NCBI GenBank assembly: GCA_002269645.1
Contig: NIVC01004550.1
Span: 1 to 42,267 of the forward strand
Origin: Macrostomum lignano
Taxonomy: Eukaryota
Length of the DNA stretch: 42,267 nt
Direction: 5' to 3'
Shown: positions 2,874 to 42,267 of the stretch, in pieces
How the letters are laid out: every line of letters begins with the position of its first letter
Position numbering within the stretch: position 1 is the stretch's first letter
The notes under the pieces: generated by a model
Database searches by the model: none
Told to the model about the DNA's origin: nothing
Seen by the model: only the letters and a program-made list of their open reading frames with translations
Position numbers and translations under genes: made by a program

Positions 2874-3043
2874 CAATCGACCAATAAGCAGACTGTTCGA
2901 ATTCGAGACTATTTGGCACAATAGGTACGAGGTAAATTGGTAAATTGCAATCATCAAATCGTTGCTTATGCTTGGTCTATATGTTCCCGTAAAGCCAATC
3001 GAACTTACCCGACACTCGGGCATCTCCCGACTGGTATCCGCAG

Positions 3044-3382
3044 GCACAACCTTGGCCTGTCGTGGTACCGCGGCCAGATGCCGCTCAGCCGACCCGGCGA
3101 TGTCACCTTGGAGAAGTCACCAGCCTATTTCGTCACCGAGGCTGCCCCAGCTCGGGTGTGGCGCATGAACACCAGCATCCAGCTAATCCTCATTCTGCGC
3201 GATCCCGTGGACCGCGTTGTCAGCGACTATGCGCAGCACGTGCACCGGCGAGTCTCCAAGGACTTGCCGCCCAAGCCGATCGAAAGTCTCGTGCTGACGC
3301 GCAACGGCGATGGCCGGGTGAATTCGAACGCCAAGATGGTGCAAACATCGCTCTATCACAGACATCTGCGGCGGTGGCTCAG
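3044..3382 (+). CDS. HS3ST: HS3ST coding exon 2
   Basis: Acceptor CAG (3041-3043), phase matches exon 1. Encodes GLSWYRGQMP, EKSPAYF and LILILRDPVDRVVSDY (3'-PB motif). Donor AG|GTGAGT at 3383. Confidence 0.93.
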
Positions 3383-3679
3383 GTGAGTAAAATCGAGTGG
3401 CTTATTGGTTACCCGTCTGACTCGTATTCGTGTAACATGTGTGAGTTCAAGGCTTAGCGCAATTGGCTCCGCCACCACTTGTCTCGTGGCTCGTGGTTCC
3501 CTCAAAAGTTACTGAATCTTAATCACATTGCTTAACCAGTTCGTAACTCCTGAACCAGGTGACTTCGTGACGCGTTCTTCTCATGAGTTTCGACTTATCG
3601 CCAACTGTATTTGGGTTTCTGAACGCTTTGAAAAAGTTTTTCTTAACAGTAAAGCCAATTGGTTTCTCATACCGCTCAG

Positions 3680-4043
3680 GTACTTCAAGCCCGACCAGAT
3701 CCACCTGGTGGATGGCGATCGGCTGGTCAGTCAACCGCACTCGGAGCTGCAGCAGGTCGAGGACTTTCTCGGCTTAAAGCGGCACATTCGTCCGGAGCAT
3801 TTTGTCTTCAACGCCACCAAAGGCTTCTACTGTCTGGCTCCGTCTGTTAGCAGCGGCCGAGGTAAAAAACGCAGACAGCGCTGCCTCGGCTCCGAGAAAG
3901 GCCGCCGACACCCGAGCGTGGCTAATTCTACTCTGACGGCGCTGCGCCACTTTTTTGCTGGACACGACGAACGCCTCGTCCAGCTGACTGGGCGCACTTT
4001 TGATTGGATGCGACGGAACGCCCAGCAGTTTGGAGAAGAGTAA
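3680..4043 (+). CDS. HS3ST: HS3ST coding exon 3 (terminal)
   Basis: Acceptor CTCAG (AG at 3678-3679), phase 2. Encodes YFKPDQIHLVDGDRL, FVFNATKGFYCL and CLGSEKGRRHP; stop TAA at 4041-4043. Confidence 0.93.
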
Positions 4044-4358: not shown

Positions 4359-5230
4359 GCAGATAAGCGAAATCTCACACTAAACCATAGACGTCTGCAC
4401 CAGTGCAGATAAGCGAAAACTTACACTAAACCATAGACATCTGCACCAGTGCAGATAAGCGAAATCTCACACTAAACCATAGACATCTGCACCAGTGCAG
4501 ATAAGCGAAATCTCACACTAAACCATAGACATCTGCACCAGTGCAGATAAGCGAAATCCCACACTAAACCATAGACATCTGCACCAGTGCAGATAAGCGA
4601 AATCCCACACTAAACCATAGAGATCTGCACCAGTGCAGAAAAGCGAAATCTCACACTAAACCATAGACATCTGCACCAGTGCAGAAAAGCAAAATCTCAC
4701 ACTAAACCATAGACATCTGCACCAGTGCAGATAAGCGAAATCCCACACTAAACCATAGACATCTGCACCAGTGCAGATAAGCGAAATCTCACACTAAACC
4801 ATAGACATCTGCACCAGTGCAGATAAGCGAAATCTCACACTAAACCATAGACATCTGCACCAGTGCAGATAAGCGAAATCCCACACTAACCATAGAGATC
4901 TGCACCAGTGCAGATAAGCGAAATCCCACACTAAACCATAGACATCTGCACCAGTGCAGATAAGCGAAATCTCACACTAAACCATAGACATCTGCACCAG
5001 TGCAGATAAGCGAAATCCCACACTAACCATAGACATCTGCACCAGTGCAGATAAGCGAAATCTCACACTAAACCATAGACATCTGCACCAGTGCAGATAA
5101 GCGAAATCCCACACTAACCATAGAGATCTGCACCAGTGCAGAAAAGCGAAATCTCACACTAAACCATAGACATCTGCACCAGTGCAGATAAGCGAAATCC
5201 CACACTAAACCATAGTCATCTGCACCAGTG
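4359..5230. repeat. 46-bp minisatellite, ~19 copies, with a palindromic core
   Basis: Unit GTGCAGATAAGCGAAATCTCACACTAAACCATAGACATCTGCACCA head-to-tail; each junction forms ATCTGCAC-CA-GTGCAGAT. Confidence 0.96.
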
Positions 5231-6050
5231 GCTATCGCAATTGTGCACCCACTGGCTTGACGAGTTTCAGTTCCGTTGTGGATCTAGATGAATTCTTGAT
5301 TGCTGATGCAGACGCACGATAAAACTGTGCTGCGATGACTTTTTGTTTCTTGGAATATGAACGCACATGTAAAATCTGATTTACATGTTACTTGAATCTG
5401 ATTTCTCTGCAAGTATTGAATTATTGATTTATTGTTTAATTCAATTTCTTCGTATTGCTGTGGTGTTAAAGCAATCGGTTAAACAGCTTTCGCCATTTGT
5501 AATTAACTTTTGTTTAAATGAGAGCGATCGATTTACCCTGGCTACCTATGACAGTTTTGTCAGTTGTAAATAATTTTGTTTGGTTGGTTAGCCTTTCACT
5601 TCCGATGTTTGCCCTCATTCTTATAGAAAACGAATTGTAATTGTTTCTGAATGTATACGACAGTTTTATTTCCTGTATTAAAATCGCGCTCTCACTCTCA
5701 CATCGCGCTGCTTTTGCACTGCCAGAAGTTTATAGTTTCATCCAGCCTATTGCGAGTTTGGTTTTCACTTGACTTCATTCAATATTCGTTGGAGTAAACA
5801 TTCTGTTATATAAAAATACAATCAAAAAGTAACGTGATGAGCCCAGTGATATTCTCAGTTACGTTTGTGTACTTGCTAAATATTAACTAGATCTGAATCT
5901 TTGTTACCTGACGCAACTTTGACGCTCATTTAATAGATTTTTAGCAGAGAGCTCAGAAAGTGCGAACCCGGGTTCCCTTCCCTGAACTGCCCGCCTGCGG
6001 CTTCATGATGAAGGGACAGCAGCGAGACATCGTCTATGGCCAAGCGATAG

Positions 6051-6243
6051 CCATTGTCGGCTGATTTTCCATGCAAGAATGGCATTCTTGCACTCTTTTG
6101 CGTGCAGGAATGGATGTCTATGGTAAAATCTCACTGAAAAAGCATTAGGCGCAGAAATGCATTCCTGCACGGTTTTGTGCATTCCTGCACGATGAATCAT
6201 CCGACAATGGAATTCCTTCACGTTCACTCGTGCGTGAAGGAAT
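6051..6243. repeat. Cluster of short inverted repeats (MITE/foldback-like)
   Basis: CCATTGTCGGCTGATT (6051-6066) vs AATCATCCGACAATGG (6195-6210), 15/16 inverted match; TGCAAGAATG-G-CATTCTTGCA (6072-6092); ATTCCTTCACG/CGTGAAGGAAT (6212-6243). Confidence 0.6.
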
Positions 6244-6259
6244 ATATCAGTGTCTGCGG

Positions 6260-6576
6260 CACCAAAATGAGTGCCTGAATGCGACACCAAAATGAGTGCC
6301 TGAATGCAGAGCCAAAATGAGTGCCTGAATGCGACACCAAAATGAGTGCCTGAATGCAGAGCCAAAATGAGTGCCTGAATGCGACACCAAAATGAGTGCC
6401 TGAATGCAGAGCCAAAATGAGTGCCTGAATGCGACACCAAAATGAGTGCCTGAATGCAGAGCCAAAATGAGTGCCTGAATGCAGAGCCAAATTGAGTGCC
6501 TGAATGAATGAAGAGCCAAAATGAGTGCCTGAATGCAGAGCCAAATTGAGTGCCTGAATGCAGAGCCAAAATGAGT
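6260..6576. repeat. 25-bp minisatellite, ~12 copies, with a 50-bp dimeric higher-order portion
   Basis: CAAAATGAGTGCCTGAATGC followed by GACAC or AGAGC; the first 8 units alternate strictly. Confidence 0.95.
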
Positions 6577-7318
6577 TTTTTCATTTTCAGATTAAAAAAT
6601 TATCAGCAAATTGAATTTCTCAATGCAGTATACATTGAATTCTACGAAATATTCGCATACCCTAAGTCCTAAACTATAGCTCAGACTCAATTAAGCGTTC
6701 ACGCAGTTTTTTGATACTTTGAAACCTATAGGAATTCACGCGCTGTCCATCTGCTGCGCTACTGACCAACTTTATCAACTGAACAAACAACTAACGAGCT
6801 GGTTTAAACGGGATCCCTACCAAGAAGCTTCAGAAGCTGAGCAATCCAAAAGCCTGCTTTAGTTCCTCCAGAGAACTTAAGACTGGCGATCTACATGTAA
6901 CGATGCCGCAGCCACATGCTTTACATTCGACGGCTGTGCACAGACTTAAGAAGCTCGGATCTTTCAACTGAACCTCGATTGCTATAAAATAACAGCCAGG
7001 TTAATTGCATCTCAGCTTGATTTGTCGCTCTCCTCAAAGCGGCTTTCACGAAGCAGACAAACTCAGCAACTGACAGCCAATTAACATGCTTAACTTTTCT
7101 TTTCGGACGGCAAAAGTGCTAACAAACTGAGCACAGCCGGTAGAAAAAAGGGACAGAAAATAGCCAGAGTAATAACCAGAGAATAACAGAAATTTTTTCA
7201 ATAAAGCAAAAGATAAAAGGAAATAAATATTAACTTGATGCTCGAAAATGTTTTGAACATTCTGTCAGTCCACGAGTCAAGCAGTTCAAAGACCCTGCAA
7301 TCAGACTCGGTCCGAGTG

Positions 7319-8410
7319 CTAACGCACGCTCTGTCGATTGCTGGCCGTCGAGCTGCTGCCAGAAGCGCCCGGTCGACGACGGCAGGAGGCGCAGCAGCAG
7401 CAGCACAGGGACAGCCACACTCGGCAAAACGCCTCTCGAAAGTTCCGTCCCATCAAGTACGTCACCCAGCACAGAGCGTTGTTCGCGTACAGCAGCGAGT
7501 TGAAGTGCCGCATCATCAATATGAAGAAGTTCAGTCCGAGCTTATTTAGAATTTGGACTTCGAGCAGAGCGCCGATGCTCCACGGCAAAGACGTGATCAG
7601 AAAGAAGACGTTGATGAAGACCAGCATGAGGCTGATCCGAACAAGCGACCTCTGTCGCTCTCGGTTGCTTCGCTGCTGCTGCTCAGAGCCGGCCGTGTCG
7701 GAGTGCATTCGCCGAGCGGTCCTGTTGTTCCAGGCCAGCAGCACGCAGATGACCACCGTGCCCGACGTCAGCGCCAGAACGAGGAACACCCTGCCGAAGT
7801 AGAACTCGACCGGCTGGTACACGAACATAAGGTAGTTCATGCTTCGTAATCCGCAGGTGTTTGTGGAGTCGTTCCACGTTCTATTCGCAATGAACATGAT
7901 CGGCAGTAGAAGTGACATTGCAGTGATGAGGCTCAGCATTACCCAGCTTCTCCGATGTGTCAGAATCACCTTGGCCTTCATCGGAACCGCTACTGCAATC
8001 AGCCGATCTACCGTGAGACCCAGTTGAAAAAACTGGGATCCCGCTAGCGCATAGTATGTAAAGAAGTCGTACACAATGCACCAAGCGAGTCTCCAGCCTC
8101 TCGGATCGGTGAACCAAGTCTACTTGTTTGTCTTCACGTAGAATGCCATGTAGCCAAAGTAGTGAGTGCTCACCTTGCACGTGAGAATGAGAAAGTCACT
8201 GGCAGTGATGATGGTGAGGTACTGCCTGGTGACGTAGGGAAACGACTTCCTGTTGGACACGATCACGTAGAAGGAGACGGCGTTCGCGACCGCTCCGACC
8301 AGACAGAGCAGCGGAAAGAGCCAGACGAAGACGTTCCAGATGAACCAGTTCCAGGTGGGGTCGTGGAACCAGGGCTCACTTGCAGCAGCTGTTGTATTGG
8401 TGCCCTTCAT
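7319..8410 (-). CDS. Intronless class A (rhodopsin-family, peptide-receptor-like) GPCR, 363 codons including one in-frame TAG at 8122-8120
   Basis: ORFs 8120..8416 and 7319..8074 are in the same frame, joined by TAG plus TWFTDPRGWRLAWCI. Seven hydrophobic segments; TM1 GAVAN, TM2 ASD, TM3 Cys and DRLIAV, ECL2 Cys (NTCG), TM6 LITSLP, TM7 ANNALCWVTY, helix 8 RNFR and a Cys cluster; N-terminal NTT sequon. ATG at 8410. Confidence 0.88.
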
Positions 8411-11327: not shown

Positions 11328-11600
11328 GAAGGGATTGTAGCCTAGTGGTTAGAGCGACGACTCACGAATTGAAGGTCGGGAGTTCGATTCCCGATCACAC
11401 TGGAACAGTTTGTGTCCAAGACACTGAACTCTGCATTGCTTCAGTTCACCCTGCAGTAAAATGGGTGCCAGCAGTCGCTGGGTAATTGAGGCTGTGTGTG
11501 GCGACCCCCCAGTCCTTCGACTGAACAGCCGTACGCAGCCATCAGATGCGCTGAGCTGTCGGTTGCACATCTGGCCCAATTGGGGCAGGTGTAATAAAAA
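11328..11600 (+). mobile_element. tRNA-derived SINE (CORE-like central domain), copy 1
   Basis: tRNA-like head with A box TAGCCTAGTGG and B box AGTTCGATTCC; central TGTGTCCAAGACACTGAAC...GTAAAATGGGT resembling the CORE domain; AATAAAAA tail; 10-bp TSD AGCCTGCAGA at 11318-11327 and 11601-11610; second copy at 26488-26802. Confidence 0.85.
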
Positions 11601-12520: not shown

Positions 12521-13491
12521 AAGTAGGCTATGTGGCGTAGAATTTGAAGCTTAATCCCACTCACTGCATTTATGGACAGGGCCAAGTTAATTTGCCTTTC
12601 TTCTTCAGTTCGTTATTTTGTATATAATTGCTTTAACTTAACACGAAGCGTGGATATTTTGCACATAAAATACGCTGCTCCGAGCAAAAAGCAAACCTCA
12701 ATACAAGTTGCTCATTGTTGTTAAAGTACAACCTAGCTGTTCATTATAATGATTCGCTGTGTACACTTTTATTTCTATTTTCAGAGGCCATTTGGAGCAA
12801 GAATTTGGTCTCGCGCTTTCCGGACGCATAAAATACTCTCTAATATTTTTTAGAGCCGCCTTATAATATGCAGAGTTGTAGTAGCTTAATGTAGCATCTT
12901 TAATTATTACTCCACACCTCGAAACCAGTGGTTTTTTAGTAAAACATCACATTTTTCTATTTGGGGCGAGAACTTTTGAATGTGCTGGGATTCCTTCCCT
13001 CACTGGTATTTGGATTTCATCTTGAGAGACATCTTGGATCATATTTAGCTATAGTAAAATAATAGCTTGTCGCTAGTCATATGTACTAAAAATGAAAATC
13101 TTGCTTGCTTGATTTTCCATAGCGTGATTCACTGGTAGACTAAAAAAGAAGCGAGTAAAAGTATGATGTTAGAATTAAAGATAAGATGCCATTGTTGATT
13201 TTGCAATTGCTTTGGGAATGATAAATATAGAGTTAATGGGATTGTGGAGGAAGTGAAAAACTTTGTACTAAAAGCCCCCCCCTATCCTGACAGCTATACT
13301 GTTCTGGGATGGTGTCCATAGAGACGAGGACAACAAATTCTATTCGCTGGATAGCCCAGCCAGCCAACAGGAAAATACAGCTGAGACATTATATTTAGAG
13401 CTGCAACTGCTCACTGGCTTAGCGACTTTCCTGGCTTAGAAGCATCTACCAATCTACCTCGACAACCAAGCCCTGCTGTCAGCGTCTTGGA

Positions 13492-13924
13492 ATGACACTT
13501 CACGAAGTTGCCATAACCTTGGCAGTGCTGATTTCATTCACCGACGGTACATCTTTTGTCTTCGACAAGAGGCCGGACCTGTGCCACAATGCTAGCACTG
13601 CAGCTGACGGTCCGCGCAAACTGCTGGGCGTTGCCGATCCTCGAGTGTGCGCTGTCGAATGCGCGAGCAACACGACTCTGTGCTCAGTGTATGAGTACTC
13701 GCCTAGCAACAGGTCATGCATTCTTGGAAACAGCTGCGACCTGCTGCTTTTCTGGCAACTCAGCGGCGGACCGGCCTGCAACACGCAGGTGCTGCGAGGC
13801 GCAGCAGACTGTGAGACTGCGTCAGTGACTCCAACTACGACTTCAATTCCGATTACGACTCCTACAACGACCACTACGACTCCGACTACAACGTATTCAA
13901 CTCCTGCTCCACTAGCACTAACAG
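13492..13924 (+). CDS. Secreted PAN/apple-mucin-glycine-rich protein, copy A, exon 1 (signal peptide, PAN/apple domain, short Thr-rich linker)
   Basis: MTLHEVAITLAVLISFTDG signal-like N-terminus; Cys pattern C...CAVEC.....LCSVYEY....SCIL of PAN/apple domains; TPTTT linker; donor ACAG|GTAAGC at 13925, phase 1. Confidence 0.8.
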
Positions 13925-14224
13925 GTAAGCATAAAAACAAGTTTACCGTACGGATGTATCTAACTTTCCAGCTTTTCCATGATGAACCACTGGTTTTGCA
14001 TCTGACATTAGTCCGATTAAGTGCGTAAAGAACAAGAAGGAATAGACTTGCAGAACCAAAAGGTGGTCGTCTGGTATTGTGGTTTGCAGGCGTTAACCTC
14101 ACATTTCTCACAAGAGGAGACTCAGAGGGCCTATATGCTCTAAGCAATAACTCTCGGCGGAGTTTTCTGGGTTTGTAGCATAAGGAGGGTTGCCAATTTT
14201 CTCCTTTGCGACATAAATTTTCAG

Positions 14225-14961
14225 TGCCAACCTCGGGTTCAAAAGAACATGGAACGCCGGTGACCTACACGCCCCCTGTGGACAATGCCTGCTATCGGTT
14301 CGAAGCGCGTGGCGCCAAAGGAGGTTCCGGAAGCGCAGCTGGTGGAAACGGGGCTATAAAAATTGCCCACTTTATCCTGAACAGCTCTCAAACGTTGACT
14401 ATTGTTGTCAGAAAATCCAGAAACGATGGCGATGGCGGCGGCGGCGGAGGCGGCACTTTCGTCTACACGAGTGGCGGCAGTCCCGTCCTGCTGCTGGCGG
14501 CCGGAGGAGGAGGCGGTGGAGGAGGCGTCAGTTCGGCTACAGGCAGCCCTGGAATCAGTTCGACCGGCGGCTGCTCCGGAAACGCGGGAAGCAACCCGTC
14601 CGGAAATAACTGTGGCGCCGGCGGTGCAGGATGGCAATCACCTGGAACTTCACCCGGAGGCAACCATTGTGGCTCAGTTGGAAGTAACTTGGCAGGAGGT
14701 GATGGTGGATCAGGAGGCGGCTTTGGTGGCTACGGTGGTGGAGGCGGTGGAGGCCGAACAAATGGAGCAAATAAGGCCGGAGGCGGCGGCGGCGGTGGCT
14801 ACTGCGGCGGCTCCGGCGGCGAATCGGGCAGTCCGGGTGGCGGCGGCTCCAGCTATGCAGCTTCTTCAGCTAAGCAAGTTTCAGGATCGGATGGAGGCAA
14901 CACCGAATCTGATGGCAAGGTAGACATATCTATCGTGAATGGCTCCTTCTGCACACCGTGA
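14225..14961 (+). CDS. Copy A, exon 2: ALK/LTK-type glycine-rich (TNF-like/polyglycine) domain, terminal
   Basis: Acceptor TTTTCAG (ends 14224) joins in frame (G+TG=Val). Motifs YRFEARGAKGG, AHFILNSSQTLTIVV, GGGGGGTFVY, LLLAAGGGGG, GGFGGYGGGGGG, GGGGGGYCGG and DGKVDI match the ALK/LTK ectodomain glycine-rich module. Stop TGA; spliced product 389 aa. Confidence 0.82.
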
Positions 14962-15610
14962 TCACCCGTTGAAAACGTTACCGGGACAGAATCGCTAAAA
15001 ACACATACAAACAACCCTATAGCGACTATTGTAAATTTTAGAACTGAAACAACTGTAATTCAACGTAGAGGCGACTGTGAAATCACAAGCGCGTCACGTG
15101 AGTGTTAGATTCTTATAAGAGTCGCGAAAGAGTCGCCCACAAGTCATTTTTTTCAATAAACGCTGTTGGAATGATAAAGGCGCGGATTTGAAGGAAAGAG
15201 TCAATTTTTGAAGACAATGTTTCGTCGTATGACAGGGACGAGTTAGCTTTCACATTTGATTTTCATTGATACATTTGTGCCGTCGTGTATTAGCATGTAT
15301 TACAGTCGTTAAGAATGCATGTTTGACAGCATTGGAGAAAGGCAGTTGAGTCACTGCTCGTTGGATATACCAGCAGAGGGTGAGGGTGTTTCAAAATTAA
15401 CGATAATTTTTTATAACTTTTGGCTGAAGGAACGTACGATCTCGTACATTTGTTCATATGTTATTCCTCTCGCGCTAGAATTTATTTTTAGAGTAAAAGT
15501 ATTGAATGTGTATGGACGTGGCTATATTCCTCTGTGACATTCTTTACGTTTTCATGGACAATAAGCTTTCTCCTGTTTCAACGCAAACGGATTTGATTCT
15601 AGATAGCTCC
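14962..15610 (+). repeat. Non-coding block 'R', copy 2 (3' of gene copy A)
   Basis: Colinear with 28689-29300 and partly with 8440-8890. Confidence 0.75.
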
Positions 15611-15628
15611 ATGTGCAAAGCCACTCTT

Positions 15629-15876
15629 TGCTGCTGGCCTGGAACAACAGGACCGCTCGGCGAATGCACTCCGACACGGCCGGCTCTGAGCAGCAGCCGC
15701 GGAGCAACCGAGAGCGACAGAGGTTGCTTGTTCGGATCAGCCTCATGCTGGTCTTCATCAACGTCTTCTTTCTGATCACGTCTCTACCGTGGAGCCTCGT
15801 CGCCCTACTTGAAGTCCCAAATCATAAAAATACTCAAACTCAACTCATTCATATTGATGATGCGGCACTTCAACTC
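15629..15876 (+). pseudogene. Internal GPCR fragment (ICL3-TM6-start of TM7)
   Basis: LLAWNNRTARRMHSDTAGSEQQPRSNRERQRLLVRISLMLVFINVFFLITSLPW is nearly identical to the 7319-8410 gene; no 5' or 3' remainder. Confidence 0.92.
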
Positions 15877-16541
15877 CACACTTCAACTCCAGTAGCAGAT
15901 TGGAGTCAGCCAGTCGATTAAAATGTTGTAAATTATCTTGTTATTTTTGGTGCATATGAGCGTAGAAGGCTGATAAATATTAATGCCGACAATATTTTTA
16001 TCATCGAATATCTTCAAACATAATAGTTTTTACCGGCTTAATCTACTAAATGAAAAACTCTCAGAACAGACTTTTCTACAGCCTGCTGATTAAATCTGTA
16101 AAGAAATCGAAAATTTATCTTAATAATCTTATTCCTTAAAATGTATTAGCATACTACTTTTACAAACTACTTGCTCAATCCTCTTATTGTTCAGTAGAGT
16201 TTATACTTTGAACAAGTTTTCTGTACGAGGCAAATGGAAAGCAGGCTGTATACTCAGACTTTTTCAGAGCTGGCGGAAAAACTATCTTGATTTTATTTAA
16301 CTCTGTCAATGAAAATCGTTAGTATAAAACTCTTCGCCGTTATAACCCACCCCGACTTCATCCTCAGTCTCAAACTGCAAAGCGATCTCACGGTCGAATC
16401 TATTCAATGCCTAAAACAACTTTCTTAACTTTCTTAACCAGTATTTCAAATATTGCATCCTGGTCTCAACGAAGTAGCTAGTAGACCATGCAGCATATCA
16501 TGCAGTTTGGAAGCTTTAAAAAGCATATTATCTGTACAGAG

Positions 16542-17893: not shown

Positions 17894-19319
17894 TGTTATG
17901 GTTTAGAATCTCCGGGGGTCCGGTCAGTTTAGGGTCTCCCCTGGAGACTTCTAACGGTTATGGGTCTCCGGGGTAGGAGATCTGAAACCGTTTAAGGGTC
18001 TCCGGGGCATTTTCAGGTCTCCGCACCCGGAGATCTTAAACCAGTTTCTGATCTCCCCCCAGGAGACTCTAAACCAGTTTCAGCTCTCCGTCAGGGCCGC
18101 AAAAACAAAGTCCTGGTTTAGGATCTCCGGTTTCCGATCTCCCCCCCCCATTTGTGTAAAACCAATGGTCATGGTATTGAACGCGTACATGTATAAGAAG
18201 TGGAAAGGCATTTTTATCATCAAGGTAGCATTAGTTTTATATGTATATGCTCGCACAACTGTGTATTTAAATGGAAAACTGTTTACTGTTAAAGTAATGA
18301 AGTAAATGTCCGCTTAGTGAAAAACCGGTGATGCACTTTCAGCCGGTGCTTGGAGGAAGCATCTCTTGAGGTGTTTCCCATTGACACACCTGGTTAGTCC
18401 TCCTAGCCTGTACACGTTTTGACCAAGACACCTGGTCACGATGTAGACTTGCTGACTCCAAGGGTATCGCATCTTACCACCCTTCCGATCGTCCCTGCGA
18501 AGATTGCGAAGCCTAACTCTGTCCCCTCGCTTCAGATCCTGAACCCCAGCTGCTCCCACGGTGTGACCAGCTCGCACCTGTCACAAGACTCGACCACTGC
18601 CTTGGCAATCGGTGTGACGGGGAGGTCAGCATAGTATCGTGCAGTAAAAAGGCTCACTGTGCTGTTGACACCCACGTGACTTCCTTGCGAGTGAAGGCTG
18701 CGGATCTTATCCCGTACCTCTTCCTCTGTGAAAAGTACTCTGCGATGGTCTTCAGGCCGCATTCGCTGACTGTCGTCCTTATTAGTCACCCTGTGGTAAA
18801 GCGCTCCGTCATGGATGGAGAAACGCTTGCTTTTTTCTCTAATACGTCTTTTTAAGTTGGCCTTATCTTTGGCGTCCAATCTGGCTGGTACCTGCGTATA
18901 TTCATTGTTTAGGACGTAGAAAAATATTTGATTGAGCGAAGCCATCAAGCTTTGAAATGCAGAAATCGACGAAAATCACACAGCACAAACCTTTCTTATC
19001 ATCTGCCCAATATAAATGTTTACAGCGCTTCCCGCCACCCATAAAATATGAGTACAAAGCTGATCTCCAAAATGTGCAAAGCCTATTGAAAGTTACGCAA
19101 GACTGCTCACACTTTGGGGTGCCAATCTCGATGTACATAGAAGTAGCGATAATTTTCATATAGAAAAGAACCGCGGAGATCCTAACACGGCGGAGACCTG
19201 TAACTCTATCTTATGTTATGGTTTCCGATCTCCGTGTGGGCGATCTTAAAATGACACAATTTTCAGTTTGTGATCTCCGGGCCGGAGACCCTAAAACGCG
19301 GAGATCCTAAACTCTAACA
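17894..19319 (-). mobile_element. Ginger DNA transposon, internally deleted (non-autonomous) copy, 1426 bp
   Basis: TGTTA...TAACA termini; CCGG TSD at 17890-17893 and 19320-19323; many GGAGATC/GATCTCC subterminal repeats; both ends homologous to the 29984-35504 element. Confidence 0.92.
18314..18945 (-). pseudogene. Ginger integrase remnant: N-terminus plus H2C2 zinc finger fused out of frame to the C-terminal domain; DDE core deleted
   Basis: MASLNQIFFYVLNNEY...LHSQGSHVGVNSTV...CDRC, then KRGDRVRLRNLRRDDRKGGKMRYPW...VNGKHLK in another frame. Confidence 0.9.
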
Positions 19320-22085: not shown

Positions 22086-23154
22086 GCCGTGGATTAGGCA
22101 ACAGCCGCAGTACGAGAAACGGCCTCTTAGCATTTCATTCGGAAGTTGCGAGCGTACCTCAGCTACCATTCCCCCCTATAGCTACCTTTAATTGTACGCT
22201 TGTATAACATTGGCTTTGGGAGTCGGTGATTAAGCAAAAGAAGCATTTGCGTATCAAAAAATTCAAGCCCAATAGGCGGAACGCTGGGGTTCTGTGCTTG
22301 GATGAAGCCATTCGGCAACGGTGTAATATCGATTTTACAGAACAGGGATCGCATGCCCATTTGTTCTTTTTTTGTTATTTTCAAAACAACTAAGCAGGCC
22401 TGAAGCCAGCTGATCACTGGATTTATGGATAACGCCAAGCTGATTTGCCTGTCTTCTTCAGCTGTAATTTTGTAAATAATTTTATAACACAACCCTAAGC
22501 CCAGATATTCTGCACATAAAATAGGCTGTGCGAGCTACAAGTAAACTCTTCAAAAAAACAGCTATATATTACTTCAGAGGTACAACCTAGCTGTTCTGAT
22601 TGTCAGTGTGCACTTTCTTCCCCATTGTCATTGATTGTCCCCTTCGTAATATGCAGAGCTGTAGCAGCTGACATAATCATTAATAGTTACTTCATACCTT
22701 TGAAATGAATGGGCTGTGAGTGTCTGATTGATATTAAGAACATTAATTTCTTCTTGAGCCGAGAACTTTGTATGCACTAGGTGCATTCTTTCTTGCAGTG
22801 GCATTTTGATTTTTACAGTAGGTGAGGTTGGATTCAGGTAGGAGCCTGGTGAGAATATTTTATTTCAGGATTTTAGGGATCATAAATATTAAAATATTGG
22901 AATTATGGAGGAAGTGAAAAACTTTGTACTAAAAGCCCCCCCCCCTATCCTGACAGCTATACTATTCTGGGATGGTGTCCATAGAGACGAGGACAACAAA
23001 TTCTATTCGCTGGATAGCCCAGCCAGCCAACAGGAAAATGCAGCTGAGACATTATATTTAGAGCTGCAACTGCTCACTGGCTTAGCGACTTTCCTGGCTT
23101 AGAAGCATCTGCCAATCTACCTCGACAACCAAGCCCTGCTGTCAGCGTCTTGGA

Positions 23155-24223
23155 ATGACACTTCACAAAGTTGCCATAACCTTGGCAGTGCTGATTTCAT
23201 TCGCCGACGGTACATCTTTTGTCTTCGACAAGAGGCCGGACTTGTGCCACAATGCTGAGACTGCAGCTGACGGTCCGCGCAAACTGCTGGGCGTTGCCGA
23301 TCCTCGAGTGTGCGCTGTCGAATGCGCGAGCAACACGACTCTGTGCTCAGTGTATGAGTACTCGCCTAGCAACAGGTCATGCATTCTTGGAAACAGCTGC
23401 GACCTGCTGCATTTCTGGCAACTCAGCGGCGAACCGGCCTGCAACACGCAGGTGCTGCGAGGCGCAGCAGACTGTGAGACTGCGTCAGTGACTCCGACTA
23501 CGACTTCAATTCCGATTACGACTCCTACAACGACCGCTACGACTCCTACAACGACCACAACGACTCCTACAACGACCACTACGACTCCTACAACGACCAC
23601 AACGACTCCTACAACGACCACTACGACTCCTACAACGACCACTACAGTTCCGACAACGACCACTACGGCTCCTACAACGACCACAACGACTCCTACAACG
23701 ACCACTACAGTTCCGACAACCACCACTACGGCTCCTACAACGACCACAACGACTCCTACAACGACCACTACAGTTCCGACAACGACCACTACGACTCCGA
23801 CAACGACCACTACGACTCCTACAACGACCACTACGACTCCTACAACGACCACTACAGTTCCGACAACGACCACTACGGCTCCTACAACGACCACAACGAC
23901 TCCCACAACGACCACTACGACTCCTTCAACGACCACTACGACTCCGACAACGACCACTACGGCTCCTACAACGACCAAAACGACTCCTACAACGACCACT
24001 ACGACTCCTTTAACGACCACTACGGCTCCGACAACGACCACTACGACTCCGACAACGACCACTACAACTCCTTCAACGACCACTACGACTCCTACAACGA
24101 GCACTACAACTCCTTCAACGACCACTACGACTCCGACAACGACCACTCCGGCTACTACAACAACCACTTCAGCTGCAACTACGACTCCGGCCACTACGAC
24201 TCCGGCTCCACTGGCACTAACAG
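23155..24223 (+). CDS. Secreted PAN/apple-mucin-glycine-rich protein, copy B, exon 1 (long Thr-rich mucin stalk)
   Basis: First ~125 aa nearly identical to copy A, followed by ~30 PTTTTTT-type heptads; donor ACAG|GTATGC at 24224, phase 1. Confidence 0.82.
23500..24200 (+). repeat. Coding 21-bp VNTR (CCTACAACGACCACTACGACT), Pro-Thr6 heptads
   Basis: Direct inspection; variant heptads end in T, V or A. Confidence 0.95.
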
Positions 24224-24629
24224 GTATGCATAGAAAGAAGTTCAGGTAGCCAAGGTAGACGAGTAGAGGAGCTCAACTTTTGCCTATTCACCGTCATAAG
24301 AGACAGGCAACCTGCTAAGACAGCAAATATAGGCGCACTTCTGGACTGCGGCCCCTCCAATTAAAATTGCTGCGTACGCACTGACCAGCGATCAGTTATC
24401 GGTCCCTGTGGCTTCCGTCAGCGACCATTCGTTGGGCCTATTTCTTTCGTACCTGATTAATTGAAAATTCTTTTTTTCGTCACGGTTTCTCAAGGGTTCT
24501 CAAATATTAATGCAGATCCCATAAAGCAATTTGCATATTTTAAAAGCTCAAACTTCGTAATTTTAATCTGTACGTTGCTAAACACTCCGACGTGTGGTCA
24601 TGATGCATTTTAAATTCGTCTTGATCTGA

Positions 24630-26345
24630 CTTGACTTAGCGACAGGGGTTTCCGGGCATCCGGATACAGCAGGGAGGGGTCGCCCATTCCGCTAACCGCT
24701 GGCGACCACGGGCAGCTGGTGCTGGGGTGTCGCGCAGGGAGATGCGGTGTGCCGGTGTCTCTGTCCGCCGGGAGAGTGGTTCGGTGGGCCTAGCTGCGGT
24801 GCGGCACGTGGGAAAGAGCTGGTGAACATGGCGTCCAGCAATTTCCTGGGTTCTCAGAAAGCGGGCCATCCGGTCTTTTAATTACTAAGAGAGAGCTTTG
24901 ACATTTTTGAGAGTGAGAGCCTCGATCACGCGTCATCACGGGTGGGTGCCTTCTGACTCCGCGCAGTATTGGCGCCACTTGTCGGACTTGGCTTTCCTCG
25001 CTCTTCTTCGTCGCTATTAGTACCCAGAGAGGAACATCACGAGCACAGAGAGGCAAAACAATGGCCTTAAAAGCCAAGACGAGCAGAAAACAAAAAAGGG
25101 AAAAAAACTTAAACCAGCAACGTTAGCAGGAGACGCAAAAGAAAGTAGGTAACGCCGTTAAAACTGGACATAGACCCCCCCGAGCAAAGGAAGCAGACGC
25201 CGCCACCGCCTGACAGAGCTGCGGCAGGTACCGCTGCACCGCACTGCTCCTCCAGTCCCCGATGCGCATGACATCCGACACGGGCGGACCCAGCGCCGAC
25301 ACCCAGGTCGCACCCCCCGCCGCAGGCTGTGGGTGGAGAAAAACTCGCGATTGAAATCGGCCGCGGCCAGCTTGCTGCTGAGAAAGCGGTCCAGCTGCGG
25401 GCCTGTCGGCAGACGCCGGTTGCCTCGGGCATCGCATAACGACCAGAGGGGCTGATCGGCCGACACCAGCCGATTCTCACAGATGTGTCGCTTGAGGCAG
25501 CGACAGGACACAGTGCCAGCCGTCGAGCCAGCCTTGGGAGAAAAACCAGATGCACGCCGCTCCTTAAACTGATGGTCTTCCGAATCGCAGCGCAGGGCAA
25601 GGACCCTGGGGTACCTCTGCGTTGCATGAGTGCTCGGCCCTTAGATGTTCGACGGAGCAGGTTAGACTTGCGGAGCATAACCGCCAGCAGCAGTTGACTG
25701 TCGCCCAGCATGCTAGCTGAAACTTGGCCCCGTCGACTTGGTGCTGCAGATCCACCAGCATGAAGAGGGATACCGGCCACTTCTTGGTAGCTGGAAGTTC
25801 CAACTCGCGTTTGGCGCCACGTGGAAGCAGTGCCGTGGCAGCATGGTTGGTCAGGTCTAGCGCAGAGTTGACTCAGAACCAGAGCGACAGGGAGCTGGCC
25901 ACAGAGGAAACACCGCTGAAGGAGCGCATCCGGGTGCCCACAAGGTCAGCCAGATAGTTGAGCAGAGCTACTACAGGACAGTGGACCGAGTCCCAATCAA
26001 ATTGCCGGCAAAACTCACGCCGACAAATTGTTGGCGCATACGAGGCGCTCAGCAGCAAGGCGTCGCGGTGGATGAGTGGGTCCGGCGCATCTTGGCGGCC
26101 TGTAAATGAAGGGAGGCGGTGGTGGCGGGGCAGAAAGGCATGCATCTGCAGAGTCGCCAGCGTCCACTGGCACAAAGAAGCATGTCAACGGAGTAAAAAA
26201 GTTTAACAACTGGCTAGGCTCATGCAGCCGAGAATTCGAATCCGCAAAAAGCTGGAACTCGCCCGATATGTGAAAGGCACAAACACTCATCCCAATGCGC
26301 AGTCATTGCCTTCCTCTTGAAGGTCTGAGGCCCTGTTGTCCATCC
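24630..26345 (-). mobile_element. DIRS/Ngaro-type tyrosine-recombinase retroelement, 5'-truncated and frameshifted, inside the intron of gene copy B
   Basis: RNase H end HISGEFQLFADSNSRL, then YR N-terminal region (LLSASYAPT...HCPVVALLNYLADL), ALCPVAA, FFSTHSLRRG (25340-25314) and GGATWVSALG...MRIGDWRSSAVQRYL, spread over several frames. The 3' boundary is approximate. Confidence 0.82.
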
Positions 26346-26487
26346 ATTTCGATTATGTTCTGAGTAGCGGCAGGATTTGAGTGAGAGTCCACCGGAAGTT
26401 CCGGTGTTGCAAATGTCTGATCGAGCCGCGGTACCAACCTCGGTTGGCGTTTCAGCAGCATCAATAGACGTGCTAGAAGTAATTAAT

Positions 26488-26802
26488 ATGATAATAATAA
26501 TTGATTAGACCTATCTAATTGGGCAGATGTGCAACCGACAGCTCAGCCGCAGCTACTGTGCGGCACATCTGAAGGCTGCGTACGGCTGTTCAGTCCAAGG
26601 ACTGGGGGGTCGCCACACACAGCCTCAATTACCCCAGCTAGCTAATGCTGGCGCCCATTTTACAGCTGGGTGAACTGAAGCAATGCGGAGTCAAGCGTCT
26701 TCCTGAAGGACACATATTGTTCCGAGTGGGTCGAGAATCGAACCCCCGATTCCAGTCCTACCAATCGTGAGTCCGACGCTCCAACCACTAGACTACAACC
26801 CC
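26488..26802 (-). mobile_element. tRNA-derived SINE (CORE-like), copy 2
   Basis: Minus strand GGGGTTGTAGTCTAGTGGTTGGAGCGTCGGACTCACGA...GGTTCGATTC; body colinear with 11331-11590; (TTA)n-like tail. Confidence 0.85.
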
Positions 26803-27944
26803 AAATTACAGGAAGCAATTAGAATACTCAATGAGTCGCTGAAAGGCGAATGCGTACTAAAGGTGAGAGACTGCTAGGCCGTAACCCCAAACCCAACAGC
26901 CAGCCAAAAGATAGCGACCGGGGGTGGCCTAAGCCCTTACCGGCCCAACCGCTAGCAACCGAGAAGCTCCCCAGCTAAGAGCCCCGCTTGTAGAAACCAG
27001 AAGCCGAACCAAAGGTCCACCAGCGCGGTGCTACTCTGGGCCCTCGAGGGAGACAAGAGGGCTGTCTCCGGAGACTGGGACTGGTCGCATACCCTGTTAG
27101 GTCAGAGGGTGATAACTGTTTCTTAGAGCCGTAACCAGATGTGCCTCATAGGCACAAATTCCCTTCCGGGCAAAGCCGGTACCCAAAACGGCCAAGCCAA
27201 GGCCACGGATGGGTTGCCGCCGTCAATCCAGCAGCCCTAGAGCTGCCTTGAACACATGCTGTTCTGGAGTTCCATTTCTATATAATTTAGGGGTTTTTCT
27301 TGTTGTCTACTCGTAATTGTACATGCATTTTATCTCTTTAATGTACATGAGCCATCCGCTCTCTCTTCTGCTTAACCCACCCCACGTTAAATCTCGTAAA
27401 AAGGCACGATATTTTGATTAAGTGCATTTTAGGTGTTTTTTATGCCTGCGCGAGATCGCAGGATTGGTGAAGGCAAAACCTTTTAAACATCCGATTTTTC
27501 TTTGTTTATTTTTTGTTCTGAAAATATTATTCGATTGAACATGTGGGATGGGAACGCCTGGGTCAACTTGTGGGTCAGCTTAGAGAGAGTTCTCCCGCCA
27601 TTCCTGCACGAATGGAGAGGAGTGGGAACGAGATAAAAGAGGAAAGTAGATTAAAAAGAAAAGAGCTGAGAAGAGGCACCAGCCTTGAGCAGACGGTATA
27701 GAGGATTCAAGCACCGGATACAGAGACTTTGCGGTCGGATGTTTGGCGACCCCTGATTAAAATAGACAAACGCTGCACACGCAATTCGCACAATTCGTTT
27801 TAAGCTTTCTCTGCTGCATTCGCGAGATATATGATATTCACACGTTTTCTAGCTCCAAGCTTCCAAAATTTCCCCTCTGGACTTCCGAATTTCAAATTCA
27901 ATTTAAATCAATTCAATTTTCTCCTTTGCGACATAAAATTTCAG

Positions 27945-28688
27945 TGCCAACCTCGGGTTCAAAACAACATGGAACGCCGGTGACCTACACGCCCCCTGTG
28001 GACAATGCCTGCTATCGGTTCGAAGCGCGTGGCGCCAAAGGAGGTTCCGGAAGCGCAGCCGGTGGATGGGGCTATAAAAATTGCCCACTTTATCCTGAAC
28101 AGCTCTCAGACGTTGACTATTGTTGTCGGAAAACCCGGAAACAATGGCGATGGCGGCGGCGGCGGAGGCGGCACTTTCGTCTACACGAGTGGCGGCAGTC
28201 CCGTCCTGCTGCTGGCGGCTGGAGGAGGAGGCGGTGGAGGAGGCGTCAGTTCGGCTACAGGCAGCCCTGGAATCAGTTCGACCGGCGGCTGCTCCGGATT
28301 GGCCAATCAAAACGCGGGAAGCAACCCGTCCGAAATTAACTGTGGCGCCGGCGGTGCCGGATGGCAATCACCTGGGACTCCACCTGGGGGCAGCCATTGT
28401 GGCTCAGTTGGAAGTAACTTGGCAGGAGGTGATGGCGCATCAGGCGGCTTTGGTGGCTACGGTGGTGGAGGCGGTGGAGGCCGATCAATGGGACCAAATA
28501 AGTCCGGAGGCGGCGGTGGCGGAGGCTACTGCGGCGGCTCCGGCGGGGCGCAAGACAATCCAGGTGGCGGCGGCTCCAGCTATGCAGCTTCTTCAGCCAA
28601 GCAAGTTTCAGGATCGGATGGAGGCAACACCGAAGCTGATGGCAAGCTAGACATATCTATCGTGGCTAGCTCCTTCTGTACACCGTGA
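27945..28688 (+). CDS. Copy B, exon 2: ALK/LTK-type glycine-rich domain (apparent 2-nt deletion at ~28067)
   Basis: Acceptor TTTCAG (ends 27944) with ~30 bp of intron conserved with copy A. GGTGGA-T-GGGGCT here versus GGTGGA-AAC-GGGGCT in copy A shifts the frame; the rest is open to TGA at 28686-28688. Confidence 0.8.
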
Positions 28689-29779: not shown

Positions 29780-29983
29780 TGTCGCAAATCGGACATGGAT
29801 TGACGTCACTAATACTTGCGGATTAAGAAGTGTAAACTACCTTAAGCTCGTGTACCAACCGGCCGAGTTCTACTTCGGCAGGGTGTTCCTCGTTCTGGCG
29901 CTGACGTCGGGCACGGTGGTCATCTGCGTGCTGCTGGCCTGGAACAACAGGACCGCTCGGCGAATGCACTCCGACACGGCCGG
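29780..29983 (+). pseudogene. GPCR paralogue, part left of the Ginger insertion (ECL2-TM5-ICL3)
   Basis: ANRTWIDVTNTCGLRSVNYLKLVYQPAEFYFGRVFLVLALTSGTVVICVLLAWNNRTARRMHSDTAG, ending in the CCGG TSD. Confidence 0.92.
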
Positions 29984-41005: not shown

Positions 41006-42267
41006 CATCTTTTCGCAGCCTCGCAATGTTTTTTTGGTGTTCACCTCTGTCGAGTGCTTCGATCACAAGCCAATGGTTCAACAGCCTAGCACATGGTCCA
41101 CAATTCTGGGGCTGATCTTGCTCCTCCGCAGCAGTTGCAAATGAAGCTATGGACCGAATTGATGCTTGTTGGATCAAATGAAATGCTGCTGTGCCAGCCT
41201 TGCTACCATAGACAAAAGCTCCGTTACATTGGCAAACCTATCTTGGATTAACTCCAATGCGCGTAAGCCCAAATGGGCTACAAAAAGCTATTTTTGTGTG
41301 ATTCGTAAACCTAAGCTGCAGCTTTTAGAGGAAAACCAACACTAATTAGCACCTAATACACTGTTCCCTGTAAATAACTTGATGCTATATTCTAATGATA
41401 TTCATCGACTCTATCAACTGATTTATGCAACATTTATCCAGGACTTACAGCCATTACTATACAAAAAGTCAGTATCCATGCCTTTTTGCGAGCGCGTAAA
41501 AACCCTTTAACAATGAGAGTTTTATTCAGTCCAAATGCATAAATTTTGCTCCAAGTGAGCGGTTAAAAGAAAAAATCTGCGATTACTTTTTTGGAAAAGA
41601 CTTTCAGAAACTTTTCCTGATGAAGACAAAAATCTGGTTCCGTCAGAATTGAACGGCAAACAGTCCGCTTGTCAGCATTGTCCGCCCAACTCCGGATAAA
41701 CCGGCTGAATCGTTCTTAGCAAAGTTTTTTCTCTCCGGCTTGTATCGATTTATACGTTTGTTTTACTAGGCCATGCTTCCTGTGGAGTTCAACTTTTGAG
41801 CAACTCAAGTTTCTGTTGACGCACGATTAACTGACTCTCTCGCTGACGCGTCAATTAAAACTTATTTGCACCAATGAGGAAGTAATTTCTAAAGACAAAT
41901 AGTAACCTTTAAAAATGACGATTTGTCGAATGCTGAGATAATTTCCGTAGCATTGTCGCAGCCTGACTTACGACTGATTCCGTCGTCGTCAAGCTAAACA
42001 GCTTTTTGTGTGCCGCACTGCCACCTACCCAAGCTTGTCTTCCAAGCGACCCCTATCATCTTCGTCCGTCTTGTTGATTGAAGTTCAAGACTTGCACAGC
42101 AGCCGTGGCAACTTGTACCTACCTGTGAGATCAAGGTGGGTCGATGATTTTTGCAGCCATCTAAGGCCATGCATAGCTTGGAGCGCGCTTTGCGCGAGGC
42201 TCTGTCTGCAGTTTATTTCGTTCTTTCTGATCGTTTCTGTCTGATTTCTGTTTTAGTTCCTTCGTGG

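Follow-up and report, generated by a model that had tools for sequence, protein, structure and literature searches.

We asked what is encoded by a gene at positions 13492-14961 (+) of a 42,267-nt stretch of Macrostomum lignano DNA (the window), and what its product may do. The question arises from an unusual domain content: an earlier note, made from the sequence alone, had described a secreted protein in which a PAN/apple module and a threonine stalk precede a glycine-rich domain (GRD) of the ALK/LTK type, with neither a transmembrane (TM) helix nor a kinase. This domain is chiefly familiar from the cancer-relevant receptors ALK and LTK, where it forms the ligand-binding head, and it is also found as the receptor-binding tip of phages. 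We call the gene copy A, to tell it apart from a tandem copy in the same window (copy B, 23155-28688, +).

Copy A is a real two-exon gene. Its spliced coding sequence of 1170 nt gives a product of 389 aa, and the exons, the junction and the length are exactly those claimed before. Exon 1 (13492..13924, +) is an ATG-initiated open reading frame that ends at the donor CAG/GTAAGC (13924/13925); it encodes aa 1-144 and the first base of codon 145, that is, the signal-like segment, the PAN-like module and the bulk of the stalk. The intron (13925..14224, +; 300 nt, phase 1, GT-AG) ends at the acceptor TTTCAG/TG (14224/14225), and an unspliced read-through would run into a stop codon at 14026-14028. 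Exon 2 (14225..14961, +) contains the end of the stalk, the entire GRD and the TGA stop codon (14959-14961). Since other frames of this GGN-rich exon are open as well, the length of the frame is weak evidence, and the reading frame used here is the one picked by homology. Residues 52-84 of A0A1I8GWL7 (P0002), a public Macrostomum lignano gene model, are identical to the frame-3 translation of nucleotides 354-452 of the spliced coding sequence. This segment spans the junction at 433/434, so that the exact splice junction is reproduced in the public model; in the paralog P0005, an intron likewise lies at the PAN/GRD boundary.

The flanks of the gene are conserved between the two copies. The region 13211..13491 (+) aligns at 96% identity with 22872-23154, which precedes copy B, and is a putative promoter and 5' UTR, with a TATA-like TATATTTA at 13391-13398 and no ATG from there to 13492. 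On the other side, a pattern scan finds an AATAAA at 15155..15160 (+), 194 nt past the stop codon, which is likely to be used for polyadenylation; the 3' flank is shared with copy B as far as 15349. The neighbours of copy A are a GPCR, a sulfotransferase and retroelements.

The product begins with its sole hydrophobic segment, which reaches 1.77 in a 19-residue Kyte-Doolittle window (aa 6-24). A signal peptide is predicted for aa 1-19 (MTLHEVAITLAVLISFTDG; 13492..13548, +), with cleavage presumably after TDG. Analogous N-termini are present in the Macrostomum paralogs, and the signal peptide of the earlier description is retained as a prediction.

The next segment, aa 31-107 (13582..13812, +), is a PAN/apple-like module with eight cysteines, at positions 31, 53, 57, 64, 76, 82, 96 and 107. 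Their spacing (C53-x3-C57-x6-C64-x11-C76, with the outer C31 and C96/C107) fits C-x3-C-x(5-6)-C ... C plus an outer cysteine pair, which we take to be the canonical PAN pattern. C53, C64 and C76 are invariant in four sequences of the Macrostomum family, and in one of two alignments of this family C57 and C96 are invariant too. The profile evidence is divided: against PAN_1 (PF00024, cut-off 21.4 bits) the exon 1 product alone scores 22.8 bits (E 8e-5), but the full protein scores 20.0 bits (E 6e-4). The match covers only profile positions 14-51 of 76 (aa 40-78), and the paralogs reach 14 bits or do not match at all. When the exon 1 product was modelled with AF2 on a four-sequence alignment, the result had a pLDDT of 43.7 and was too poor for a fold search. 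We thus keep the PAN/apple assignment, which the conserved cysteines and the exon 1 score support and the score of the full protein does not, as a marginal identification.

The stalk (aa 111-146; 13822..13924, +, with V145 and P146 completed at the start of exon 2) was recognised by its mucin-like composition. It has 17 threonines and 7 prolines in 36 residues, as expected from the threonine stalk described before, and is homologous to a 31-copy, 21-bp repeat of copy B. Such a composition suggests O-glycosylation.

Is the C-terminal half a GRD? Glycine makes up 81 of its 243 residues. A search with the whole protein returned one match, with poly-Gly words saturating the candidate list; with a heavily X-masked alignment just three Macrostomum proteins came up, and sparse, staggered X-masking of the glycine runs gave 64 relatives. 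With phmmer, 407 relatives of the GRD were found at E<=1e-3 among 1.84 billion representatives. A direct match to the profile ALK_LTK_GRD (PF12810) was not obtained, either with the full protein (E<=10) or with the exon 2 product (E<=0.01), and NCBIfam gave no match for the GRD. Probably, filtering for biased composition hides the PF12810 match, and the profile does match 30 of the 61 aligned relatives (best E 3.6e-45). P0004 and P0008, two of the relatives that phmmer links to copy A (E 4.8e-20 and 2.3e-14), themselves match PF12810 at 1.5e-17 and 3.9e-32. With a family profile that includes copy A, the chains of ALK/LTK are found at E~2e-27, and SCD-2 follows at 6e-9.

The structural check that had been proposed, AlphaFold with Foldseek against ALK/LTK ectodomains, was positive. 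The AF2 model of the GRD has a pLDDT of 84.7 and a pTM of 0.87 and consists of eight strands, contributed by the N- and C-terminal parts, with a glycine-rich core between them that is neither helix nor strand. In a search of the PDB with this model, the top 21 matches are all GRDs of ALK, LTK or SCD-2 (E 4e-10, probability 1.00, TM 0.6-0.68). Homology, AF2 and Foldseek together firmly confirm an ALK/LTK-type GRD at aa ~155-386 (14254..14949, +), in which a poly-Gly region is inserted into a TNF-like beta-sandwich.

The domain is, on the other hand, a short form, so that the earlier claim of a complete module is only partly right. Copy A does not have the ~45-aa N-terminal TNF-like segment ('FTxCGxxGxxGPxxxQC...') of ALK/LTK and the long-form members. 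This segment is part of the consensus of the family alignment (A4) and is missing from all Macrostomum paralogs as well as from copy A, where exon 2 begins ~12 aa ahead of the strand equivalent to 'GIQxWTVP'. We considered a hidden exon for the segment and rejected it, since the 300-nt intron has no such open reading frame and the paralogs are without the segment too. There is also no EGF-like module after the GRD: only three residues lie beyond the last conserved strand and Cys387, and the stop codon follows directly after the GRD in copy A, in copy B and in the paralogs. The absence of a TM helix and a kinase was correctly described, as the whole protein has no hydrophobic segment apart from that at the N-terminus and none of the six frames of the window contains kinase motifs.

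To place this domain, we compared it with known GRDs. The human ALK/LTK and C. elegans SCD-2 GRDs (PDB 7LRZ, 7MZY, 7NX1, 7NWZ, 7LIR) have the fold in common with copy A, and also the motifs GAxGG, VGQxG, GGGGGxF/YV, AAGGGG, GGFGGGGG and GGGGGY. The sequences are 21-26% identical, and copy A starts without the first ~45 residues of the TNF-like part. A TM helix, a kinase and EGF-like, MAM or LDLa modules are likewise missing from copy A, and human ALK itself is matched directly with only 18 bits (E 0.008). The closest sequences outside Macrostomum are instead bacterial GRDs, from stand-alone or surface-type proteins, with 50-57 bits per domain and 38-48% identity, such as the 'glycine-rich protein' WP_162038014 of Chengkuizengella sediminis and GRD proteins with PEP-CTERM or TIGR02543 repeats. 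Many of them are of the same short form and start at the strand 'xxQxxTVPxTGxYxIxAxGAxGG'. In sequence, the GRD of copy A is thus far closer to the bacterial short-form GRDs than to ALK/LTK. The bacterial domains occur in contexts with PEP-CTERM, PKD, Ig-like modules or Listeria-Bacteroides repeats, and have no PAN module, mucin stalk or introns. Bacterial contamination as the source of copy A is ruled out by the spliceosomal intron, the PAN exon and the flanking GPCR, sulfotransferase and retroelements.

At the level of the fold, viral proteins are equally close. The search of BFVD with the GRD gave a match as strong as that to ALK (E 7e-10, TM up to 0.69), and fold-level matches include GRD proteins of phages and giant viruses. 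The tail-fibre tips of cyanophage Pam3 (gp24) and Salmonella phage S16 (gp38) combine a TNF-like with a glycine-rich domain, as copy A does. For Pam3 gp24 the authors ascribe the recognition of the host receptor to these two domains (PMC9608196). Trimeric fibres, helical shafts and dependence on chaperones are features of the phage proteins.

An architecture resembling that of copy A is found in a coral. The 'leukocyte tyrosine kinase receptor-like' protein P0187 of Acropora millepora (409 aa) has a signal-like N-terminus, a PAN_1 match (E 9e-4) and a GRD, and neither TM helix nor kinase. Unlike copy A, it has no stalk, and its GRD is of the ALK-type long form with a direct ALK match at E 2e-11. 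Orthology of the two can be rejected, as their GRDs match with only 6 bits and their PAN modules show no detectable relation. Judging from these scores, the two PAN-GRD architectures were probably assembled independently.

The nearest relatives of copy A are other Macrostomum lignano proteins, which UniProt has automatically named 'Apple domain-containing': PAA61162/PAA91998 (BOX15_Mlig019850g1/g2), BOX15_Mlig028980g1, and A0A1I8IMG2, A0A1I8GWL7 and A0A1I8J935. The features that they have in common with copy A are a signal peptide, a PAN-like cysteine module, a short-form GRD that ends in a conserved cysteine, and an intron at the PAN/GRD boundary; in all, at least five Macrostomum lignano relatives show this architecture. 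The in-frame parts of A0A1I8GWL7 are almost identical to copy A. In general, however, the GRDs of these relatives are only 46-47% identical to that of copy A over the matched stretches, and P0003, P0005 and P0006 are without the threonine stalk. The exact protein was absent from the databases searched. Copy A is a member of a lineage-expanded Macrostomum family: it is uncharacterised, as the earlier note had suspected, but already public in the form of unnamed or automatically named proteins. The Macrostomum literature that we searched contained nothing on apple/PAN or glycine-rich proteins of this family or on their gene identifiers, a seminal-fluid in situ screen with its supplements (PMC5977470) mentions no such protein, and our literature search linked no expression, localisation or binding data to copy A or its paralogs.

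Copy B allows us to see how such genes change. Its exon 1 (23155..24223, +) encodes the same signal and PAN segments (96% identity) and a stalk of ~246 aa, compared to 36 aa in copy A. This long stalk is built from a 21-bp (7-aa) unit that occurs 31 times, in an array detected by TRF (23517-24168). Exon 2 of copy B (27945..28688, +) encodes the GRD; with the 3' flank it is 88% (BLASTN) or 92% (MAFFT alignment) identical to exon 2 of copy A. Near 28065-28067, two base pairs are deleted, which shifts the frame towards a stop codon ending at 28339; either a pseudogene or an assembly indel would account for this. The tandem arrangement, the variable stalk and a dN/dS of 0.56 in the GRD form a pattern that suits secreted interface proteins.

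Which function would fit these properties? We favour, with about even confidence, a secreted and probably heavily O-glycosylated binding protein with two heads, belonging to the lineage-expanded PAN-GRD family and acting outside the cell. The signal peptide would direct the protein into the secretory pathway, and the PAN/apple-like module would bind a partner, either a protein or a carbohydrate. Between the heads, the Thr/Pro stalk, longer or shorter depending on the copy, may serve as a stiff glycosylated spacer. At the other end, the GRD, with a putative poly-Gly lattice packed into the TNF-like beta-sandwich, would offer a rigid recognition surface; phages use this fold as the receptor-binding tip of their tail fibres, and ALK/LTK use it as their ligand-binding head. 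Two heads and a spacer would enable copy A to bridge or coat extracellular targets, and these might be mucus, matrix, gland secretion or microbial surfaces; signalling would not be involved. What the analysis establishes is the structure of the gene, the GRD (firmly) and the PAN module (marginally), the lack of a TM helix and a kinase, the membership in a family, and the affinity of the GRD to short-form, bacterial-like domains; secretion, glycosylation, what the two heads do and where the protein acts are inferred. No function is known for any GRD outside receptors and phages (PMC4859500).

The earlier note had offered two roles, and the mucus, adhesive or immune cross-linker fits better as a candidate than the ALK decoy. 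In the latter case copy A would be a soluble decoy or ligand carrier, whose free GRD captures the ALK ligand of the worm and so modulates the activation of the receptor. We consider this very unlikely. The fold is that of ALK/LTK and the protein is soluble, without TM helix and kinase, as such a role would have it, but the 18 bits to human ALK stand against the 50-57 bits per domain to bacterial GRDs, and two parts of the receptors, the TNF-like segment at the N-terminus and the EGF-like module, are absent. Nor does the locus look like that of a conserved regulator of signalling, for it holds a tandem family of several copies that changes fast, varies in its stalk and has one copy broken. We find nothing that links the gene to ALK signalling. 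A quite different idea is that of a purely structural, glycine-rich material protein without any specific binding head. It could appeal to the glycine content of one third in the C-terminal half and to one relative that UniProt has automatically named 'Loricrin', yet the glycine-rich part is not mere low-complexity sequence: its motifs align one after another with those of the GRD family, and a confident prediction gives it an ALK-type globular fold, which makes this idea, too, highly improbable.

A more serious doubt concerns the state of copy A itself. The block VVRKSR (aa 205-210; 14404..14421, +) differs, as had been noticed before, from the canonical VVGKPG of copy B, which is also found in P0002. 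By column conservation in alignment A4, R207 (AGA, 14410-14412) occupies a position of the 'VGQxG' motif at which at least 90% of the 61 relatives have glycine. R207 may impair the GRD, and the pLDDT falls to 80 in this block. Copy A could then be a decaying, non-functional paralog, damaged by G207R, P209S and G210R, with the functional gene elsewhere in the genome. Three non-synonymous transitions within 12 nt, the frameshift in the adjacent copy B, and the dN/dS between the copies (0.56 for the GRD; for the PAN region 1.9, a value based on very few changes) can be read in this way. On the other hand, the frame of 389 codons is fully open, the splice sites are intact, the promoter flank is conserved and a polyadenylation signal is present; AF2 still folds the GRD confidently, and exon 2, with its dN/dS below 1, seems to be under some constraint still. 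Taken together, we regard decay as a minority possibility, to be taken seriously but improbable, and keep the two-headed binding protein as our working interpretation.

The PAN-GRD family is also of interest for the assembly of the ALK ectodomain. In copy A the GRD cassette lies on a single exon, is of the short form and resembles the GRDs of bacteria or phages. That a single phase-1 exon holds the whole GRD, beside an adhesive module to which it is not related, shows that the GRD can act as a shuffled cassette. Since it is close to the short-form GRDs of bacteria, a horizontal origin comes into question, but this does not settle the matter. In a speculative and rather improbable scenario, the flatworm family would be an animal use of the GRD binding head independent of ALK. 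The domain would be either a retained free-standing ancestor of the ALK module or a horizontal acquisition, which exon shuffling, by way of the phase-1 intron, combined with a PAN module and a mucin stalk of variable length; today it would be part of a secreted molecule for recognition or adhesion, with microbial surfaces as one possible target.

Macrostomum lignano is a worm in which in situ hybridisation, RNAi and transgenesis are routine, and a multi-copy family of secreted PAN-stalk-GRD proteins in it would be a tractable system for the role of free animal GRDs. Even if copy A should turn out to be only a decaying paralog, the locus still records a fast turnover of genes of this kind, with the expansion of a stalk, a frameshift and the change of a conserved motif.

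Copy A (13492-14961, +) is split into two exons. Exon 1 (13492-13924, +) begins with the ATG at 13492 and ends at a consensus donor (CAG/GTAAGC at 13924/13925), and a 300 nt phase 1 intron with the acceptor TTTCAG/TG at 14224/14225 leads to exon 2 (14225-14961, +), which is open to a TGA at 14959-14961. The spliced CDS of 1170 nt yields the same 389 aa protein that the earlier note had proposed; reading through the intron runs into a stop at 14026-14028. An AATAAA is found at 15155 (+), 3' of the gene. Two further frames of the GGN-rich exon 2 are open as well, so ORF length alone is weak evidence and the choice of frame must rest on homology, which does select the frame of copy A.

The closest database protein is the Macrostomum lignano entry P0002 (UniProt A0A1I8GWL7, automatically named "Loricrin"), an intron-less version of the copy A gene in a frame-scrambled translation. 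It is identical to copy A in long in-frame stretches (up to 67 aa), and its residues 52-84 are the frame-3 translation of nt 354-452 of the spliced CDS, across the 433/434 junction; this support for the junction is that of a public gene model, not of read-level RNA evidence. Together with a shared repeat, the near-identity to P0002 points to Macrostomum lignano or a very close relative as the source of the window. In the paralog P0005 (BOX15_Mlig028980g1, contig NIVC01002498.1), too, the PAN/GRD boundary is interrupted by an intron, and a single exon encodes the glycine-rich domain (GRD). P0002 switches frame several times, and in both P0002 and P0011 (A0A1I8J935) the Thr stalk is translated in the wrong frame ("DYDSYNDHYDSDY"). 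An indel-rich assembly seems to underlie both models, which makes the automatic names "Loricrin" and "receptor protein-tyrosine kinase" misleading.

A signal-like segment and the Thr stalk that had been described are there: the only hydrophobic stretch is N-terminal (aa 6-24), with a presumed cleavage after TDG19, and of the 36 residues of aa 111-146, 17 are Thr and 7 are Pro. The PAN/apple module found marginal support. The cysteine spacing C53-x3-C57-x6-C64-x11-C76, together with outer cysteines, fits such a module, and the cysteines are kept in the Macrostomum paralogs. PAN_1 gives 22.8 bits (E 8e-5) with exon 1 alone, covering only the core of the profile, but 20.0 bits with the full protein, just below the cut-off of 21.4. 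The AF2 model of exon 1 (pLDDT 43.7) is too poor for judging the fold. We call the module PAN-like, a marginally supported assignment.

For the C-terminal half, PF12810 gave no direct score with the copy A sequence, which formally speaks against the domain assignment in the earlier note, but the other tests for a GRD were positive. An exhaustive phmmer search with copy A returned 407 relatives, including bacterial proteins that match PF12810 at 1e-17 to 4e-32, and a profile of 46 sequences (copy A included) picked up C. elegans SCD-2 at 6e-9 and the ectodomain chains of ALK and LTK at E~2e-27. The AF2 model from a 61-sequence alignment (pLDDT 84.7, pTM 0.87) draws eight strands from its two ends, with the Gly-rich core placed between them. 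Its 21 best Foldseek matches in the PDB are all GRDs of ALK, LTK or SCD-2 (E 4e-10, TM 0.6-0.68), so the proposed ALK/LTK-type fold holds; next in rank, at E 0.03, is a phage tail tip. Among predicted viral structures, GRD proteins of phages and giant viruses match the model as well as ALK does (E 7e-10, TM up to 0.69).

That the module is complete is only partly right, since the GRD is of a short form. About 45 extra N-terminal residues are present in the family consensus, in ALK/LTK and in many bacterial GRDs ("FTxCGxxGxxGP..."), whereas in copy A and all Macrostomum paralogs the domain starts directly at the strand equivalent to "GIQxWTVP". Copy A has no TM, kinase or EGF-like module and ends 3 residues past the last conserved strand; copy B and the paralogs terminate at the same point. 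Every frame of the window is free of kinase motifs, in line with the proposed absence of a kinase. In per-domain phmmer comparisons with the copy A GRD, Macrostomum paralogs score 58-76 bits, bacterial GRDs 50-57, a Trichomonas protein 22.6, human ALK 18 (E 0.008) and the coral PAN-GRD protein 6. Among the relatives from bacteria are WP_162038014 (Chengkuizengella sediminis), several PEP-CTERM proteins and one protein with TIGR02543 repeats.

The plan of a PAN-like module plus GRD is common to five Macrostomum lignano database proteins, mostly auto-named "Apple domain-containing protein" in UniProt, with one "receptor protein-tyrosine kinase". The literature searched does not mention these five. 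The claim that this is not a characterised family stands insofar as the family is unnamed and unstudied; its parts are of known kinds and its members were already deposited. In a nematode-adhering fungus, too, PF12810 has been noted in stand-alone proteins of unknown function (PMC4859500). The architecture is not unique to Macrostomum: the 409 aa Acropora millepora protein P0187 (NCBI "leukocyte tyrosine kinase receptor-like") likewise combines a signal-like N-terminus with PAN_1 (E 9e-4) and a GRD and lacks TM and kinase. Unlike copy A, it carries a GRD of the ALK-type long form, which matches ALK directly at E 2e-11. Neither of its domains is detectably close to its flatworm counterpart, and the two pairings probably arose separately. 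We found no description in the searched literature of the PAN-stalk-short-GRD combination, of a bacterial-like GRD on a single phase 1 exon or of the tandem turnover.

In copy B (23155-28688, +), exon 1 (23155-24223, +) encodes signal and PAN as in copy A, but the stalk consists of 31 copies of a 7 aa unit (21-bp repeat at 23517-24168, +). A repeat-laden 3.7 kb intron precedes exon 2 (27945-28688, +), where a 2-bp deletion near 28065-28067 shifts the GRD frame into a stop codon ending at 28339, reflecting either a pseudogene or an assembly indel. The frame of copy A is intact. The reported difference between VVRKSR in copy A and the canonical VVGKPG in copy B is real: R207, S209 and R210 face G, P and G in copy B and P0002, and R207 takes the place of a Gly that at least 90% of 61 relatives retain. 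Over the 281 nt 5' of its ATG, copy A shares 96% identity with the flank of copy B, which lies 9.7 kb further downstream. Between the copies, dN/dS is 0.56 in exon 2 (14227-14958 vs 27947-28685; 16 synonymous and 25 non-synonymous changes) and about 1.9, from 8 changes only, in the PAN part (13492-13830 vs 23155-23493). Because dS is about six-fold lower in the PAN exon (0.014 vs 0.088), the sequences suggest that gene conversion acted on the 5' half once the duplication had taken place.

While the anatomy of copy A is plain, we infer secretion, glycosylation and binding; that it is a secreted, O-glycosylated, two-headed extracellular binder has about an even chance of being right. The stalk, a spacer whose length differs between copies, would hold the PAN-like head and the rigid GRD head apart, and the protein could act in mucus, matrix, gland secretion or on microbial surfaces. 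A decoy or ligand carrier, the free GRD acting in ALK signalling, had also been proposed; the fold is shared with ALK, but support ends there, and the short, ALK-distant GRD, the missing EGF-like module and the turnover of the family make this role very improbable. Slightly less probable still is a purely structural glycine-rich material, given that the Gly-rich half is predicted to be a confidently folded domain.

Decay is a real, if minority, possibility for copy A specifically, as it carries R207 and sits next to a broken copy. With similarly modest odds, the GRD may be an ALK-independent cassette, possibly horizontally derived, that was domesticated as a secreted recognition head.

The window is eukaryotic in content, with spliceosomal genes, a rhodopsin-type GPCR, a sulfotransferase and retroelement remnants. 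The GPCR ORF (7319-8074, -; 7tm_1, E 1.5e-12) has a near-identical partial fragment directly downstream of copy A (15613-15921, +). Since a 55-nt exact match to this fragment lies downstream of copy B (29929-29983), the duplicated unit seems to include the GPCR piece. In the copy B intron, a GC-rich insert (~25100-25800, -) contains overlapping ORFs with "HSLRRG" and "GDWRSSAVQRYL" motifs, reminiscent of a tyrosine-recombinase (Crypton/DIRS-like) element; these ORFs gave no Pfam match. Close by, a 250-nt repeat (26554-26802) has further copies at 11331-11551 and in an M. lignano contig (L001). An LTR-retrotransposon pol remnant (39797-41177, -; RVT_1 and RT_RNaseH, GC 63-65%) is broken into overlapping frames, and apart from it a fragment with an integrase H2C2 zinc finger is found at 18532-18948 (-). 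Two ORFs at 2937-4043 (+) jointly span a Sulfotransfer_1 domain (profile positions 57-148 and 148-231) and are probably the two exons of a carbohydrate or heparan-type sulfotransferase gene. An Rfam tRNA match at 1351-1440 (-; 60 bits, full model, over 90 nt), where ARAGORN calls no tRNA, could represent a tRNA with an intron or a repeat derived from a tRNA. Satellite arrays occupy 5-443 ((GACA)n, then a 48-bp unit), 4359-5230 (46-bp unit, 19 copies, 95% matches) and 6262-6576 (25-bp unit, 12 copies), the last underlying a spurious repetitive ORF at 6003-6584 (-).
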